Positions 58,291-64,000 of a DNA stretch of 64,000 nucleotides are shown here, piece by piece. Below the pieces are notes generated by a model. The model saw only the letters and a list, made by a program, of their open reading frames with translations, was not told where the DNA came from and ran no database searches. The position numbers were made by a program, and so were the translations under genes. Each line of letters begins with the position of its first letter. Position 1 is the first letter of the stretch. The stretch lies in sequence record ON287370.1. One strand, 5' to 3'.

Positions 58291-60312
58291 TTAACGAGCG
58301 ATTGGATGACAGAATGCTTCTAAAGCACCACCCTGACGATTCTTGATCAGGAAGTTAATTGGACTACCCAGCAACGCACTACCCTGCCAACCATACAGCA
58401 AGGTATTGCCCAAACCACGACTCAGTACGGCATCATGCAAACTGATAAAGTTACGCGGTTCGTCACCGATCGGAATACCGAAGTCGAGATGCTCAGGATC
58501 TCGTGCCATACATGCCCACAAGAAGATAGAGTGCATGATACTATTCGCACCTTTATACTTCTCATCTACTACCTTCCAGAATGCAATCATGGTTTCGCCA
58601 TGTAACTCAGGAGTTACTTTGACATCCCAACGACGATTGATATTCGGGAACTTCAGGAATGTTTCAACACGTTTACGATAAGCATCCAGGTCTTCGTTTA
58701 CCAGTGGTAATTCGAATGCTGGTTCTTTGAAGTTGAAGTCTTTAAGACTAATCTTAAATGTACGACCTTCTTCTTCCATTGGTTTGCTCAGCAGATACTC
58801 AATGAACGGCTTAGTCATTCGAGCATCACGAGAAGCTACCGTAGTGATCACGATCGGATAATGAACTGCTTTACGATTATCGAACATTGGGTTAACGATG
58901 TTAACACGCAGTTTAATAGATTCATAAGTACGCAGACGAGATACATCAAGATCTTCAATGTTATCCATGAACTGGAAGTCAGAGAAGTCCTGCTGAGTTT
59001 CTTTATCCAAGATGATATACGGATCTGCTTCCTCGTTGAGGATACCTTTATTGAAATAGATGAAGTCTCCAGAATCATCCGTTGTGATATAGTCCACATC
59101 CTGACGTTGTACTACAAAGCCTTTTGCAGTTGCAGTACCGATACGGTGTTTGGTTTTCAAGATCGACTGACCAATAGGTTCCGCAAAAGTAGAGCCATAG
59201 AACAGACCTGGAACTGCAGACTTCTTAGTATATGGATTATACGGAAGTGCAGATTCCATCTTACCGAAACATTTGGAACAAGGCTTGCCATCATGGCCAG
59301 CATCTTTACACCATGCAACATCACGAATACGGATGATGTCACCAGTTTCGATTTTCTTCAGTTCTTCATAAGTCAGCAGAGTGGTTGTGCCATCATCATT
59401 AATCCGCCAACGACCAGCCAGAGACAATTTGAATTCCCTGGAGATGATCTTCAGAACTGGACCTGTTGTAGAACCACAGTCAGTTTGATAACGAACGCCC
59501 TGAACGACTTGAGACACGTTGTGGATCTTTTTATGGAACCATTCAGAGTCCTGCAAAGCCGAGCCGTTAGAGATCAGGGAGAAACCAGCGCCTTTGGAGT
59601 CACCCAATGAATCTGCCAGGTTAGTAATACCATCTGCATAAGACGTCATTACTGTATTTGGCAGGATCACGTTGTTCAAGTCAAACACGTCACCACGAGC
59701 AATTACCAATTGGAAAGACTGAGTTGGGTTAACGGCACGAGTACGATACAGAAGACCGAAGACAGACTTATCAAAAGCCGGATCTTCCATCATGATCTTT
59801 TCGAACTCTTTAGCTGCATCAGCCAAATTGGTTTTACCTTCCTGAACACGTTTCTTCAGGTCAGCTACCGGTGGATGACGATAACAATGAACAACGTCCA
59901 TAGCACGAGCAGACACAACACCAGTTTCAGAAACCACGCACATATAGTTATGAACCTGGTTGTGCCAAGTGAACACCAGCTGTTTGATGAAATCATAGAA
60001 AACCGGATCATCATATTTAGGCATCAAACGCCCCAGGAAGTGATCAATTGGTTCCTTGAGTACATCATCATCGATAAATGCTTGGCGGCCTTTAGGGGCC
60101 ACCAGGACTGCCAGTTCATCAACATGATAAGGCTCATCATTGAAGTGCCGATGAACAATCAGACTGAACCAGGAAAGAGCTAACATCCAACTATCTGTTA
60201 TGATCTTTTCACCCTGGTCATCCATTACTTCAACTTTAAACCGACGTTCGGTAAATTGAAGCATAGAGATCAGAGAGAGATTAGCGAACTCGCGCAGCTT
60301 TATCGTTTTCAT
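58291..60312 (-). CDS. rpoC: Non-virion RNA polymerase beta'-like subunit, C-terminal part (phiKZ gp74-like)
   Basis: 673 aa; QSFQLVIARG, DSEWFHKK, DCGS, C..CFG and AEPIGQSILKTKH (trigger-loop equivalent). Confidence 0.9.
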   Translation of the reverse strand: MKTIKLREFANLSLISMLQFTERRFKVEVMDDQGEKIITDSWMLALSWFSLIVHRHFNDEPYHVDELAVLVAPKGRQAFIDDDVLKEPIDHFLGRLMPKYDDPVFYDFIKQLVFTWHNQVHNYMCVVSETGVVSARAMDVVHCYRHPPVADLKKRVQEGKTNLADAAKEFEKIMMEDPAFDKSVFGLLYRTRAVNPTQSFQLVIARGDVFDLNNVILPNTVMTSYADGITNLADSLGDSKGAGFSLISNGSALQDSEWFHKKIHNVSQVVQGVRYQTDCGSTTGPVLKIISREFKLSLAGRWRINDDGTTTLLTYEELKKIETGDIIRIRDVAWCKDAGHDGKPCSKCFGKMESALPYNPYTKKSAVPGLFYGSTFAEPIGQSILKTKHRIGTATAKGFVVQRQDVDYITTDDSGDFIYFNKGILNEEADPYIILDKETQQDFSDFQFMDNIEDLDVSRLRTYESIKLRVNIVNPMFDNRKAVHYPIVITTVASRDARMTKPFIEYLLSKPMEEEGRTFKISLKDFNFKEPAFELPLVNEDLDAYRKRVETFLKFPNINRRWDVKVTPELHGETMIAFWKVVDEKYKGANSIMHSIFLWACMARDPEHLDFGIPIGDEPRNFISLHDAVLSRGLGNTLLYGWQGSALLGSPINFLIKNRQGGALEAFCHPIAR

Positions 60313-62389
60313 TTTCTTTCCTAAATCCTAAACCAAAATCAGAGAGCATGTTATCAATTACCTGGAGAGAGTGGTTCTTCTTCTCTTCACCAGGTAGGAC
60401 CAGACGCGGAATTTCGAATGGGTTGTCGGAACGAATTAATCGACGGACAGCTTCTTCTAACAATTCGGCGCTGTTGGCTAAAGCCAGTACTCGTACTGCT
60501 GCGCCACCACCTTTTTGGTTAATATATAAACGGCCTTCAGTTTCACCCACATTTCGGTTCAACGTTGCGCGATAGAAATCACGGGCACGTTCATGTTTGG
60601 ACAGAGATGTCGGCAGACCAAAGATGTTCAGCTTCGGAGTGGATTGACAAGAGATGTCATCACCGAATTTATCCAACATGATATAATAAACGGAACTAAT
60701 CACGATTGGATGGCGACTACGTTTCTTTTCACCCCATTCATTAATCCAAGTTACTGGAGTTGGTTGAATGTGCGGATATTTGTCTGCAAGACGTTCGATG
60801 ATCTTAACACCTTGAACATCGCCAGTGTTATTACCAAGCGCAGAGAACTCATTCTCATCCCGCATAATCCATTCCAGATGCTGCATGCGTTCTTCCGCAT
60901 TAAAAGCATCTGCCATTGCCCCATGATCAGGAGAAACGGTATCATAGAAATCACGTGCAAGCTGCCAGGCTTTCTTGAAGTCTTTGGCTTGATACGCTTT
61001 AACGATTTCTGGATAAAGATGGATATTGACAAAGTTGATATCTAATTCCATAAAGGAGTTAAAGATCTGTCGACGATAACCAGGAGTGTTACCAACAACC
61101 ATATCGGCCATTACGCCGTGATCATCAACCGGCGCACATTCAGATGGTAGAATCTTCATGATGACAGATTTGTTACCATCCATACCAGTATTCTTGAATC
61201 GAACTTGACCTTCAACATCTTCACGCAGAGAAACTTGGATACGCCAATCTTTCAACTGGATATTACCCAGCTTACGTTTGATCTTAGTATATTTACCATT
61301 AGAGTTTGGAGTGGTGAAATCACGAGTGATCTGACCTGCACCCATAAAGGTAATGAAGTTCCACAGTTCACGAGTCAGAGGCGGCTTCTTATCGATATAC
61401 TGTTTCTGTTTAGAACGATACCAGCTCACGATGCTATTTGCGAAACTGTTTTGTTCCTCTTCCAGTCTTTCCAGTAGACGAGTATGAGGTTGACTACGTT
61501 TCTCAGCACGTTTGTTATTGGATAGGTTCTTATAACGCTCAGTCTCAACTTTGATATCTGCAACGATACAGTTTGGAGATGAATAGAACAGAATGTCATA
61601 AATTGGATCTGGATTCATCAGAGCTGCTTTAGTTAAGCCAGCCATTGCTGCATCAGGATCCTTACGACGGAAGCCCATTACAATACCATCGCTACGAACC
61701 TTCTCACCAGACAGTGGAACACCTTGGTGATTATCCAGTGTGCCATACAGATTCAACATAACGTATTCTTCTTCGTTCCATTGGAACTCCAGATTACGTT
61801 TGAATGTTACACCAATCTTCTTGGCATAATGTTCAAAGATGAATACCGCATCCTCCTCGGTATACGAGTGAGACATCGCAGCTACTTTAGTCTCAACACC
61901 AGGACACCACTCATTGGACTCAGTGATTCGACTACTGGTCGCGAACACGGTACCTTTACGGAATCGAGCACCTTTAGTTAACTGACGCATCAGGTCGTTA
62001 TCATAATGATACTCAAAGCCAAGGTCCATATTTTGAGCATTGAACTTGGGCATCTCGATGAGATCATAGAAGCCAGTTTCTAGATCCTTAACGATTACAT
62101 AATAAGTACCCCACATGCTGGGTTCTTTTTCGTTAATGATGTCACGTACAAACAGAACCTCTTCGACTTCCACATCAGAGAGAGCTTGTACCTTTCGAGC
62201 AGTTCGTGCATATTCTTGTTCATCGCCAGAGGAATATTTGCGGTTAGTGGATCCCCAAATAACGGCAGCCTTACCTTGGTTCTTACCAAGCATATACAAA
62301 CGTGCAGAGGAGTTAGTTGCACGGTTTGGGTTCATACCGATGGCTAGGCCAGCAGTATTAGATTTTATTTGGTTATGTTTATTGCTCAT
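60281..62389 (-). CDS. rpoB: Non-virion RNA polymerase beta-like subunit, C-terminal part (phiKZ gp71-73-like), uninterrupted
   Basis: 702 aa; SSAR..M...N, YTEEDA, K..G.DGNK.V, P.D..G..AD, N..G.P, GETEGRL. Confidence 0.9.
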   Translation of the reverse strand: MSNKHNQIKSNTAGLAIGMNPNRATNSSARLYMLGKNQGKAAVIWGSTNRKYSSGDEQEYARTARKVQALSDVEVEEVLFVRDIINEKEPSMWGTYYVIVKDLETGFYDLIEMPKFNAQNMDLGFEYHYDNDLMRQLTKGARFRKGTVFATSSRITESNEWCPGVETKVAAMSHSYTEEDAVFIFEHYAKKIGVTFKRNLEFQWNEEEYVMLNLYGTLDNHQGVPLSGEKVRSDGIVMGFRRKDPDAAMAGLTKAALMNPDPIYDILFYSSPNCIVADIKVETERYKNLSNNKRAEKRSQPHTRLLERLEEEQNSFANSIVSWYRSKQKQYIDKKPPLTRELWNFITFMGAGQITRDFTTPNSNGKYTKIKRKLGNIQLKDWRIQVSLREDVEGQVRFKNTGMDGNKSVIMKILPSECAPVDDHGVMADMVVGNTPGYRRQIFNSFMELDINFVNIHLYPEIVKAYQAKDFKKAWQLARDFYDTVSPDHGAMADAFNAEERMQHLEWIMRDENEFSALGNNTGDVQGVKIIERLADKYPHIQPTPVTWINEWGEKKRSRHPIVISSVYYIMLDKFGDDISCQSTPKLNIFGLPTSLSKHERARDFYRATLNRNVGETEGRLYINQKGGGAAVRVLALANSAELLEEAVRRLIRSDNPFEIPRLVLPGEEKKNHSLQVIDNMLSDFGLGFRKENENDKAARVR

Positions 62390-62468: not shown

Positions 62469-62804
62469 ATGCCTTTAATCGTTCCTTATGGTAATGCATA
62501 TTACTTTACCCCAGAATACAAAACAATCATTCGTTCTTGCAAAGAGATTTTGTTAGCACAAGCTTCTTTCTCTCCATTCATCGGGGATTCAATTAAGTTT
62601 GCTTATCGTTACAACTTCCACAAATTCCTTAGACAGTTGGGTGGTGAGAATCCATCTATCCCTGAGGAGTTGATCTGGACCATTAGTTATCTAAATGGTA
62701 TTGAAGATCCTAATCAGGACTTTATGCACTTAAAAGGAATCTATACCGTTACAGCAGAACAAATTGATTCTGTCATTCAAGTAACTCGTGTAAGAAGAGA
62801 ATAA
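62469..62804 (+). CDS. Conserved small protein (phiKZ gp70-like)
   Basis: YY.PEY...I...L...Y.YNF..FL...P....W....LNG...P pattern; divergent from nvRNAP beta; ATG 62469 (track start is a TTG). Confidence 0.6.
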   Translation: MPLIVPYGNAYYFTPEYKTIIRSCKEILLAQASFSPFIGDSIKFAYRYNFHKFLRQLGGENPSIPEELIWTISYLNGIEDPNQDFMHLKGIYTVTAEQIDSVIQVTRVRRE

Positions 62805-62825: not shown

Positions 62826-62853
62826 CTACCACCTACTATAGAGTAGGTGGTAG
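62826..62853. terminator. Bidirectional terminator hairpin
   Basis: Perfect 12-bp stem CTACCACCTACT-ATAG-AGTAGGTGGTAG. Confidence 0.85.
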
Positions 62854-62876: not shown

Positions 62877-64000
62877 TTAGTAGTTGTTAATCCCAACAGT
62901 ACCACCGTATTCCATTCCACCGATTGGATTCTGGAAGCCAGTGTTCATTGGTTGTTGGAAGTTGTTCTGCATCTGGTTACCTGCTGGTACGAAACCACCG
63001 GTATACGGATCACGAACAAACCCACCCATCTGCATACCCATAGGCAAACCGGTGTTTGGCATGCCGTTCATCATACCGGGGATTGGCATCATTCCTGGAA
63101 GACCGGTATTAGGGAGAGCCATCATGCCAGGCATGCCCATGTTGTTTTGCTGCATTGGGTTTTGGAAGTTCTCAGAAATGAAACGACCATCTTCAGCCAC
63201 ACAACGAACACGAACATAACCATTAGACTGTTGGAATTTAAATTCATAAATACCGTTAGTCTGGTTATAATCACAACCGATATAGTTCTCACCTGGCAGT
63301 GCATCTGGAGTCTTAGGAGCAGAAGCAGGAGTATTAGCACCAGTAGGAGCCGGTACATTTCCATTATCGCTAATAGTGTTCAGCACACCAGCCATTGGGT
63401 TATAGCTAGAGATACGAGCACCACTGTTAGACGCCGGAGCTTCTGGAGCAGAAGTCATGTTGTAGTTGTTATAATCCAGGGAAGGAATCAGTTTCTTGAT
63501 TTCACCGATTTCATCCAGATCAGACAACCATTCCAGATCGATACCATAAATACCAATGGAGTCAAACTCTTTACGGAACTTACCAATCAGACTGTTCAGG
63601 TCAGATGCAACCAGACCATACGAATGCAGATAAGCAACCAGACGTGCTGCATCAGGAGAAGTAGTGGAATACTTCTTACGAGATGGATCCAGACATGCCG
63701 GCAGTGCCAGTTCGAACAGAGCCTGAGTTGTACGCATAGCTTGCATGGATACATTCAGGTTATTGAAGTTCAGGCGATCACCTGGCTTCATGTGATCGTT
63801 CTGACCGATGGTCCGACACAGTTCAGTATAGAACGGGAAGCTTGGAGTAGCAGTATAATAGATGGACTCATCGTCATCCGTTTTACCACCTTTAATCAGA
63901 CTGAAGTTGATCAGTCGAGTATCCAACCCATTACCTTCAACAGTAATAGAGATCGTTTTGATAATATCGATCACTTCCTGTTTAACTGCTTTGGTTGCTG
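62877..64000 (-). CDS. PicA/Imp1-like phage-nucleus protein import factor (phiKZ gp69-like), 5'-truncated by the window edge
   Basis: Frame is open to the window end. L.KGG...A..SFP.Y.EL, ALF...LP....YS..S..A and W...L....IP.L..N match my recollection of the gp69 family; position is upstream of the gp70- and gp71-like genes. Confidence 0.55.
   Translation of the reverse strand, partial: ATKAVKQEVIDIIKTISITVEGNGLDTRLINFSLIKGGKTDDDESIYYTATPSFPFYTELCRTIGQNDHMKPGDRLNFNNLNVSMQAMRTTQALFELALPACLDPSRKKYSTTSPDAARLVAYLHSYGLVASDLNSLIGKFRKEFDSIGIYGIDLEWLSDLDEIGEIKKLIPSLDYNNYNMTSAPEAPASNSGARISSYNPMAGVLNTISDNGNVPAPTGANTPASAPKTPDALPGENYIGCDYNQTNGIYEFKFQQSNGYVRVRCVAEDGRFISENFQNPMQQNNMGMPGMMALPNTGLPGMMPIPGMMNGMPNTGLPMGMQMGGFVRDPYTGGFVPAGNQMQNNFQQPMNTGFQNPIGGMEYGGTVGINNY

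Follow-up and report, generated by a model that had tools for sequence, protein, structure and literature searches.

What is the protein encoded at the extreme end of the genome record of Serratia phage vB_SmaM-Sureiya, and what might its almost uncharged C-terminal tail contribute to a nucleus-forming jumbo phage? The window analysed here was the whole stretch of 64,000 nucleotides that forms the final 64 kb of this genome, and was 100% identical to ON287370.1. The original prediction had assigned the terminal ORF to PicA/Imp1 (phiKZ gp69) and likened its tail to FG-nucleoporins. The evidence presented below places the ORF with the neighbouring gene family, that of phiKZ gp70 and PhiPA3 gp64, and is consistent with a tail that may serve, at the chimallin shell, as a low-complexity domain with a cohesive or tethering action; this combined reading carries moderate confidence.

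Extent and architecture of the gene

The gene was located on the minus strand (62877..64000) and overran the end of the window, where the GenBank record likewise stops. No start codon lay inside; the GTG start listed for the ORF was rejected as mechanical, since the frame runs off the window end without a start. The portion present was the 3' three-quarters, comprising the codons for residues 124–496 and the stop codon (62877–62879, minus strand), i.e., the C-terminal 373 of 496 residues, with 123 N-terminal residues missing. The full-length ortholog in phage Yubaba, a 99%-identical sister phage, is 496 aa long.

An AlphaFold2 model, based on an alignment of 68 sequences, predicted a full-length protein with a folded alpha/beta core (residues 1–303), followed by a disordered linker, a small module of beta strands and a disordered tail of 95 aa. 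The part of the core within the window (residues 124–303; 63459..63998, minus strand) was modelled with pLDDT >90 and ended at IPSLDYNNYN, after which four segments followed in the minus-strand translation: linker, beta module, tail and stop codon. The linker, composed of Pro, Ala, Ser, Asn and Thr, was 56 aa in length (residues 304–359; 63291..63458, minus strand), with pLDDT <50 for residues 304–345, while the beta module (ENYIGC...ISENF) was 42 aa in length (residues 360–401; 63165..63290, minus strand) and was modelled as four strands with pLDDT ~94. The Met/Gly/Asn/Pro/Gln tail (residues 402–496; 62880..63164, minus strand) was, together with the linker, mostly below pLDDT 50 (residues 403–496), the exception being a short beta hairpin predicted for the two lineage-specific GGFV motifs (62988..63026, minus strand; pLDDT ~65). 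The linker, the beta-rich module of ~40 aa and the tail of ~100 aa that had been described from the translation were all present, as segments of 56, 42 and 95 aa. The expectation of disorder also agreed with the model, in which no stable fold was predicted for the tail; tail and linker are predicted to be intrinsically disordered, low pLDDT being suggestive of this rather than proof.

Relatives of solved structure were not found by sequence, whether the single sequence or the 68-sequence profile was used, and Foldseek comparison with the PDB returned nothing below E = 0.08. The best PDB match was a weak resemblance of the beta module to the WRKY-type four-stranded sheet; the module was without the zinc-ligand pattern. 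A fold search of BFVD retrieved uncharacterised jumbo-phage proteins only, and Pfam gave no match at E ≤0.01 and noise only at E ≤10. The folded alpha/beta domain is phage-specific.

The 95 residues of the tail included 19 Gly, 16 Met, 13 Asn, 12 Pro and 9 Gln, and three charged residues (R, D and E). Met clustered in the first half and Phe/Tyr in the second, where there were four Phe, and the last residue was Tyr. A recount returned the motif frequencies reported previously (PNTGLP and GGFV twice each, GMM three times, and NNFQ, TGFQ and ENFQ once each), as well as the near-absence of charge. When the six-frame translation of the window was reduced to stop-free segments of ≥100 aa (30,608 aa in total) and scanned as 19,610 windows of 95 aa, those with no more than three charged residues, and likewise those with at least 12 Met, were found in this ORF only. 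The composition of the tail is far beyond chance for the Sureiya genome.

At the level of DNA, Tandem Repeats Finder returned no rows for the tail region and a direct-repeat search found two short, chance-level pairs only. Recent duplication was rejected as an explanation for the PNTGLP pair, because these repeat searches were negative and the two copies differed at 5 of 18 bases, all synonymous. A plus-strand ORF (62884–63219) was also rejected, as an unsupported shadow of the Gly/Met/Pro-rich coding frame. Just past the stop codon, and between two convergent genes, there was a terminator-like hairpin with a 12-bp stem followed by a T-rich run (62826..62853, minus strand). Rfam gave no match around the locus.

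Orthology and gene order

The window fragment matched PHIKZ070 by blastp (E = 1e-10, or 9e-7 with low-complexity masking), whereas comparison with PHIKZ069 gave E = 6.6, i.e., no similarity. Similarly, the full-length Yubaba ortholog matched PhiPA3 gp64 (E = 6e-18) and phiKZ-type gp70 (E = 3e-16) by blastp, and produced no match to PhiPA3 gp63. In PHROG searches both the fragment (E = 1e-50) and the full-length ortholog (E = 3e-98) belonged to phrog_3520, which takes in the window ORF, PhiPA3 gp64 and phiKZ-type gp70; neither matched phrog_3141, which takes in PhiPA3 gp63, phiKZ-type gp69 and Yubaba gene 02340. Profile-profile comparison of the two families with hhalign indicated no relation (probability 0.2%). 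The PicA ortholog was Yubaba 02340 (phrog_3141, E = 6e-90), which lies one gene upstream and outside the window; it is this gene, and not the ortholog of the window ORF, that fills the slot directly downstream of the gene for gp68, an nvRNAP subunit. On the basis of these comparisons, the window ORF is the Sureiya ortholog of phiKZ gp70 and PhiPA3 gp64, a gene that was present in 160 phage records. The identification as PicA/Imp1 was off by one gene, and because the ORF matches gp70 and not gp69, the premise of the original prediction does not hold.

PicA/Imp1 (phiKZ gp69, PhiPA3 gp63) belongs to the same gene block, is encoded by the adjacent gene, is of similar size, and has been published as shell-associated. 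In PhiPA3 gp63 the C-terminal ~60 aa are likewise uncharged, and rich in Gln/Asn. However, the PicA orthologs of Yubaba, Miami, PCH45 and the phiKZ-type phage OMKO1 had no charge-poor C-terminal stretch of at least 20 aa, and that of OBP had one of 20 aa. In phiKZ itself, the last 90 aa of PHIKZ069 contained 12 charged residues and 2 Met, and those of PHIKZ070 contained 3 charged residues and 19 Met.

The window ORF shared with other members of phrog_3520 a core, a low-complexity linker, an uncharged Met-rich tail and the same gene position, although core identity with PhiPA3 gp64, phiKZ gp70 and 201phi2-1 gp126 was only ~23–26%. The 42-aa beta module was kept in enterobacterial, Aeromonas, Vibrio and EL-like clades, and stood before the tail in those of Serratia, Klebsiella, OBP, Aeromonas and Vibrio; phiKZ/PhiPA3-type members were without it and had a short motif instead.

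Twelve phages were compared for gene order: Yubaba, OBP, Miami, pTD1, EL-like GXNNE2, PCH45, Proteus phage 10, RAY, SA002, FLC9, OMKO1/phiKZ and PhiPA3. The conserved order was ChmA, nvRNAP beta', gp59-like, SbcD, gp66, ChmC, gp68, PicA, gp70, a small antisense gene and nvRNAP beta, and in all 12 the gp70-family gene came directly after picA. In 12/12 phages the small gene (phrog_3455), encoded on the other strand, separated the gp70-family gene from the nvRNAP beta gene; it corresponds in the window to a convergent neighbour at 62469..62804 (plus strand). The gene for the beta subunit of the non-virion RNA polymerase (phrog_3295; 60281..62389, minus strand) is a marker of the conserved chimallivirus block. 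Yubaba gene 02220 matched phrog_4795 'nuclear shell protein' (E = 9e-125), gene 02320 matched the ChmC/Imp6 family (phrog_3284), and a nuclear shell protein is annotated in OBP, which belongs to the same genus. The gp70-family gene thus has a chimallivirus (Chimalliviridae) context, with ChmA and the core block encoded in the sister phage Yubaba.

Conservation of tail chemistry

A tail of 52–120 aa was present in 111 of 112 homologs, and the last 60 aa contained less than 10% charged residues in 133 of 141 full-length members (~94%), phiKZ gp70 included. Among the 111 tails, the median Met content was 15.8% (maximum 34%) against 3.0% in cores, while charged residues had a median of 3.0% against 23.8%. 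Identity dropped faster in tails than in cores, and tail indels were numerous. An aromatic residue occurred within the final three positions of 96 tails; the end was aromatic in the Sureiya protein but Leu or Ile in the Pseudomonas-type clade. The dipeptides GM, GF and GY were enriched in tails by 1.8x, 2.5x and 1.7x respectively, and hydrophobic residues were spaced weakly more evenly than expected by chance. The linker was kept in length (~49–78 aa) and was variable in sequence. The suggestion that composition rather than sequence might be conserved among orthologs was thereby borne out, with Met at ~16% and charged residues at ~3% despite fast sequence turnover, in a set that includes phiKZ gp70 and PhiPA3 gp64. 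As judged from these alignments, selection acts on the chemistry of the tail (uncharged, with Met and Gly/Asn/Gln/Pro, Gly-hydrophobic dipeptides and a hydrophobic, usually aromatic, end) and not on its sequence.

This chemistry was not uniform. Tails were Met-rich, Gln/Pro-rich or Gly-rich depending on clade, several clades being Met-poor and Gln/Pro-rich, and charged tails occurred in PCH45, among the 12 phages, and in P0135, P0080, P0140 and P0133, within the 141-member set. These were not frameshift artefacts, as the contigs concerned held no alternative frame rich in Met, Gly and Pro. Since some members carry charged tails, charge-free chemistry is not indispensable. In the literature that was searched, no description of a Met-rich tail in gp70/gp64 was found, nor a newer name for the protein; the single 'methionine-rich' match concerned host Dps.

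The resemblance to FG-nucleoporins, which had rested on spaced Phe motifs, did not extend across the family. Phe was depleted in tails (median 1.9%, against 4.6% in cores) and absent from 17 of 111, and FG and GF dipeptides together had a median of one per tail, with FG not enriched. The paired GGFV and PNTGLP motifs were restricted to 1–2 of 111 tails, belonging to the closest relatives only, and the Pfam nucleoporin-FG family did not match the protein even at E ≤10.

Association with the nuclear shell

PhiPA3 gp64 is expressed early, localises to the nuclear shell and was found together with gp63 in ChmB pulldowns (PMC10643120). In the phiKZ TnSeq tables, with columns as read here, PHIKZ070 is nearly insertion-free, like PHIKZ068 and PHIKZ069. 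Published work on phiKZ includes gp70 in its list of 'nuclear proteins'; after co-expression in E. coli, the protein was not recovered with Imp1 on purification (10.1101/2024.03.27.586873), and so there is no support for its acting directly in the known import complex.

The shell protein itself has C-terminal tails, which link protomers in the lattice (PMC10643120). In 11 of the 12 phages the ChmA tails were uncharged and rich in Gly, Gln/Asn and aromatics; the uncharged stretch was 63–75 aa long in the five phages measured, and ended at or near an aromatic residue. The sole charged ChmA tail among the 12 was that of PCH45, which also has the sole charged gp70-family tail, although this is a single event of co-variation. 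The contigs of the metagenomic charged-tail members P0135 and P0080 end short of chmA. There was no sequence similarity between ChmA and gp70-family tails beyond composition, and the ChmA tails were poor in Pro and contained less Met. That the gp70-family tail mimics the C-terminal segment of ChmA was not supported: local alignments within the same phage surpassed those with shuffled tails only in FLC9.

Possible functions of the tail

Given that the tail is real, predicted to be disordered and conserved in composition, and that the protein is shell-associated, the mechanism that we infer to be most likely is that it forms a cohesive, low-complexity element of the shell region. Met and aromatic residues would act as 'stickers' in a flexible polar spacer, making weak multivalent contacts with partners that could include other copies of the tail and the C-terminal tails of ChmA, which are likewise uncharged. 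The folded domain could in this way be kept at the shell on a long tether, or the contacts could assemble a mesh locally. High Met content is also a feature of the C-terminal domain of yeast Pbp1/ataxin-2 and of the M domain of SRP54/Ffh; in these Met-rich domains, Met is used in weak hydrophobic contacts. The Pbp1 domain forms cytosolic redox-sensitive condensates and the SRP54 M domain is folded, and we know of no homology between either and the gp70-family tail.

Among the alternatives, the strongest is that the tail is a passive spacer or entropic bristle, giving reach or steric exclusion, its composition reflecting no more than avoidance of charge and folding. Fast sequence turnover, the many indels, lineage-specific motifs, variation in composition between clades and the charged tails of some members would all be expected of a spacer. 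However, a five-fold enrichment of Met and a bias towards GM, GF and GY recur in distant clades, most members retain a C-terminal residue that is hydrophobic and usually aromatic, and spacing is already provided by the separate Pro/Ala/Ser linker. Moreover, spacers are typically charged or rich in Pro, Ser and Thr, and not in Met. On balance, a purely passive tail is considered unlikely.

Two further possibilities appear improbable, and about equally so. The first is that flexible Met residues offer a promiscuous hydrophobic surface for patches on cargo or on assembling shell subunits, much as the Met-rich M domain does in SRP54/Ffh, or Gly/Met-rich regions do in certain J-domain chaperones. 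A Met content reaching a third of the tail in some members would suit this role, and import in these phages is signalled by a patch on the protein surface, where, for GFPmut1, a Phe is important (PMC11087766). Yet the SRP54 M domain is helical as well as folded, while the gp70-family tail is predicted to be disordered and is rich in Pro and Gly; the Met-poor, Gln/Pro-rich clades are difficult to reconcile with client binding, and gp70 has not been connected genetically with the import of any cargo tested.

The second retains the analogy with nuclear pores but transfers it from PicA to gp70. Cohesive nucleoporin domains of the GLFG type are charge-poor and rich in Asn, Gln and Gly; like the tail, for which disorder is a prediction, they are disordered, with interspersed hydrophobics, and both occur at the edge of a compartment that contains DNA. 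Charge-free Met/aromatic tails of gp70, possibly along with the C-terminal tails of ChmA, might then form a selective cohesive phase, with Met replacing Phe and Gly-Met or Gly-aromatic pairs as the counterpart of FG, which would aid selectivity or sealing at a transport site in the shell. Retention of tail composition between lineages with ~23% core identity, the enriched Gly-hydrophobic dipeptides, the position of the PhiPA3 ortholog at the shell and the scarcity of transposon insertions in phiKZ gp70, comparable to imp1, are consistent with such a filter. Conversely, the gp70-family tail has no repeated FG motifs, has Met as its dominant hydrophobic residue in the order Gly-hydrophobic, is rich in Pro, and is a single stretch of 60–130 aa per protein, where FG domains extend over hundreds of residues and dozens of repeats. 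Nor did gp70 interact with Imp1 in E. coli or feature in the published import-mutant selections that were found, and some lineages have charged tails. An FG-like gate is therefore possible but unsupported.

Slightly less probable still is a role in RNA export or ribonucleoprotein formation, in which the tail, as a prion-like domain, would associate at the shell with ChmC/Imp6 and mRNA to give condensate-like assemblies. ChmC is an RNA-binding shell protein according to published work, is encoded three genes upstream and also has a Gly/Gln/Asn-rich C-terminal region; the gp70-family gene is embedded among nvRNAP genes, and Arg/Gly-rich ends replace the usual tail in P0135, P0142 and P0144, as does an Arg-rich end in PCH45. 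Against this, Pfam searches detected no RNA-binding domain, an uncharged tail cannot bind RNA electrostatically, and no published interaction with ChmC was found in the literature consulted. Finally, the reading of the protein as PicA/Imp1 with a selective gate of spaced phenylalanines, which drew on the picA neighbourhood, the uncharged and predicted disordered tail and four Phe peculiar to Sureiya, is scarcely tenable, given the refuted identity, the upstream location of the true PicA ortholog, the depletion and poor conservation of Phe, the lack of a Pfam FG match and the charged, Met-poor end of PHIKZ069.

Implications for nucleus-forming phages

Automatic reading would file this ORF under PicA/Imp1, and the assignment is corrected here. 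The correction bears on the passage of proteins and mRNA through the protein shell that encloses the phage nucleus, where known shell-associated factors include PicA/Imp1, ChmC/Imp6 and ChmB, none of which is known to be a pore or barrier. The gp70/gp64 family is common to nucleus-forming phages, shell-associated in PhiPA3 and nearly free of insertions in phiKZ. It now gains a feature that can be checked, a predicted disordered tail whose chemistry is maintained while its sequence drifts, and with it a candidate role at the shell, where the tail may serve as a cohesive or tethering element.

Identity of the open reading frame

The minus-strand open reading frame (ORF) with a stop codon at 62877-62879 (-) contained no further stop upstream as far as the window end; the GTG listed as its start is therefore mechanical. 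The window was 100% identical to the final 4 kb, and by extension to the final 64 kb, of Serratia phage vB_SmaM-Sureiya (ON287370.1), and window base 64000 is the last base of that record. The entire gene was present in the record of the sister phage Yubaba (99.2% identity to the window over a 4-kb query), where it encodes a hypothetical protein of 496 aa. The window ORF corresponded to residues 124-496 of this protein, with one substitution. A terminator-like hairpin was situated directly 3' of the stop codon, while no RNA families or DNA repeats overlapped the region of the ORF.

The original prediction identified this ORF as PicA/Imp1 (phiKZ gp69), the phage-nucleus import factor, but this was ruled out by blastp, PHROG families and profile-profile comparison alike. 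When 50,697 phage records were searched by tblastn, the gene was located in 160 jumbo-phage records; in PhiPA3, the match fell inside gene 064, whose annotation likens it to phiKZ gp070, and not gene 063 (likened to gp069). By pairwise blastp, the Yubaba protein matched PhiPA3 gp64 at E = 6e-18 and, in phage OMKO1, the phiKZ-type gp70 at E = 3e-16, with no match to gp63/gp69. The window ORF matched PHIKZ070 with E = 1e-10, which was still 9e-7 under low-complexity masking, so that the core must drive the match; the value for PHIKZ069 was 6.6. The ORF was grouped with PhiPA3 gp64 and OMKO1 gp70 in phrog_3520, while PhiPA3 gp63, OMKO1 gp69 and Yubaba gene 02340 belonged to phrog_3141, and phrog_3209 occupied the gp68 position. 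Comparison of the phrog_3520 and phrog_3141 profiles gave a probability of 0.2%. Both similarity and synteny placed the ORF with gp70/gp64, and neither similarity nor position agreed with PicA/Imp1. It is almost certainly an ordinary ortholog of the known but uncharacterised gp70/gp64 family. Given this separation, the PicA/Imp1 ortholog of Sureiya is the adjoining upstream gene, which lies outside the window.

[quoted passage not shown] Within this block, a small opposite-strand gene of phrog_3455 (62469-62804 (+), 111 aa) was found between the gp70-family and nvRNAP beta genes in all 12 phages examined. Its position is unannotated in the phiKZ record AF399011.1; the transposon tables for phiKZ name the gene PHIKZ070.01, and one of their data sets shows it free of insertions (PMC12676376 supplement). 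The large nvRNAP subunit genes phrog_3295 and phrog_3015 (58291-62389 (-)) overlapped by 32 bases (60281-60312), as they also do in Yubaba, N1M2 and OBP.

Protein anatomy

Translation recovered every string and motif count originally quoted for the ORF, and the proposed succession of linker, compact beta module and nearly charge-free tail was likewise borne out. On the minus strand, the core extended down to 63459 and was followed by a Pro/Ala/Ser/Asn linker of 56 aa, a module of 42 aa and a C-terminal tail of 95 aa (G19 M16 N13 P12 Q9, with three charged residues). AlphaFold2, using a 68-sequence alignment, predicted the core confidently as far as approximately residue 300 (pLDDT > 90), a linker mostly below 50 (residues 304-345) and a four-stranded beta module (approximately 94). 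The tail scored 35-48, which suggests disorder, except for a short hairpin formed from the two GGFV motifs. Sequence and structure searches identified no solved relative of the core fold; its predicted-structure relatives were solely uncharacterised jumbo-phage proteins.

When stop-free segments of at least 100 aa were scanned in every frame of the window, no other segment contained a 95-aa stretch with three or fewer charged residues or at least 12 Met. G-C content rose to 0.50 across the tail-coding region (62900-63199), against approximately 0.42 nearby, because of the Gly and Pro codons. A 111-aa open frame antisense to this region (62884-63219 (+)) was unsupported as a gene, being a by-product of the minus-strand Gly/Met/Pro/Asn codon bias.

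Conservation of the tail

A search of 5.8 billion proteins provided 112 homologs, and 38 representatives were recovered when 1.84 billion cluster representatives were searched exhaustively; the family was restricted to jumbo-phage-like sequences. Past the module position, all but one of the homologs (111/112) continued into a tail of 52-120 aa. Composition rather than sequence was kept: median Met was 15.8% in tails against 3.0% in cores, Gly 16.0% against 5.0%, Asn 13.0% against 5.9% and charged residues 3.0% against 23.8%, while the tail lost sequence identity more quickly than the core did and indels were numerous. The last 60 residues were less than 10% charged in 133/141 full-length members, and a hydrophobic, usually aromatic, residue stood at or beside the C-terminus in 96/111 tails. 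PhiPA3 gp64, the OMKO1 protein and PHIKZ070 shared this tail type; the last 90 aa of PHIKZ070 included 19 Met and 3 charged residues, and those of PHIKZ069 2 Met and 12 charged. The beta module was kept down to approximately 30% core identity; phiKZ/PhiPA3-type members lacked it and had a short conserved motif in its place. A few members had charged tails, some Arg/Gly-rich, and inspection of alternative frames ruled out frameshift artefacts. In Pseudomonas phage Churi (OM718002.1), a gene under the tblastn hit carries the label 'Med15 subunit of mediator complex protein', probably an annotation artefact of the Gln/Met-rich low-complexity tail of a gp70 ortholog.

The spaced Phe motifs originally likened to FG-nucleoporins were not a family character. 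Median Phe was 1.9% in tails against 4.6% in cores, and Phe-Gly was enriched only 1.15x, compared with Gly-Met (1.8x), Gly-Phe (2.5x) and Gly-Tyr (1.7x). Paired PNTGLP (2/111 tails) and GGFV (1/111) were confined to the nearest relatives.

C-termini of shell-associated proteins

Tails were compared among 12 phages of different genera. The last 60 residues of ChmA, whose C-terminal region is the published lattice-linking tail (PMC10643120), were nearly uncharged in 11/12, being rich in Gly, Gln/Asn and aromatics, with an aromatic at or near the end. The exception was Serratia phage PCH45, where the ChmA tail (chmA gene at L010 5459-7438) was Arg/Gly-rich and 34% charged in its last 60 aa; the gp70-family tail of PCH45 (gene at L010 16986-18407) was Asp/Tyr/Arg-rich, 63% charged and the sole highly charged example among the 12. 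This single event hints that the two tails co-vary in charge. At the level of sequence, gp70-family tails did not mimic the ChmA tail.

All 12 orthologs of the shell-associated factor ChmC/Imp6 (L005:15424-16194, L006:11835-12593, L007:12896-13684 and nine further loci) ended in a conserved acidic-aromatic motif, which consisted of an aromatic, an acidic run and an aliphatic, then either Pro or an acidic residue, with Phe last. It was preceded by a Gly/Gln/Asn-rich stretch, Gly making up as much as 55% of the final 60 aa, and resembles a short docking motif placed at the C-terminus. PhiPA3 gp63 (L003:1859-3505) and gp64 (L003:3480-4805) shared the final four residues LGLL; gp63 also had an uncharged Gln/Asn-rich end of approximately 60 aa, absent from the Yubaba PicA ortholog.

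Possible role of the tail

PhiPA3 gp64 is expressed early, localises to the nuclear shell, was picked up by RecA and ChmA proximity labelling, and was recovered along with gp63 in pulldowns of the shell-associated ChmB (PMC10643120; 10.1101/2023.09.22.559000). A list of nuclear proteins includes phiKZ gp70, although on co-expression in E. coli, gp67/Imp6 co-purified with Imp1 and gp70 did not (10.1101/2024.03.27.586873). On our reading of the columns in the transposon data, PHIKZ070 had one insertion site, with three reads, in its 1302 bp, PHIKZ068 and PHIKZ069 were similarly scarce in insertions, and PHIKZ070.1 (171 bp), in contrast to PHIKZ070, had 135 reads (PMC12676376 supplement). The literature search returned no paper giving the family a further name or mentioning its tail, and a Met-rich, charge-free tail shared across the family seems to be previously undescribed.

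The tail may be a cohesive low-complexity domain, in which weak multivalent contacts through Met and aromatic residues would form with the tail itself, with the chemically similar ChmA tails, or both; such contacts could keep the folded domain tethered at the shell or produce a local mesh there. This role at the shell is proposed tentatively, at somewhat below an even chance; gp70/gp64 identity and a cohesive or tethering tail, taken as one package, was considered evenly balanced. Competing explanations are that the tail acts passively as a spacer, that its Met residues form a surface for cargo binding, or that it is an RNA-related prion-like domain. A true FG-like filter, moved from PicA to gp70, is improbable. 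The tail shares the charge-free and predicted disordered character of FG-repeat domains but does not have their repeats. PicA with Phe-based repeats is refuted, failing on identity and on the repeats alike. The original observation was thus confirmed and its interpretation partly supported, without the PicA identity or the Phe-based repeats, and the Met-rich, charge-free tail may be a useful lead for the problem of transport at the phage nucleus.
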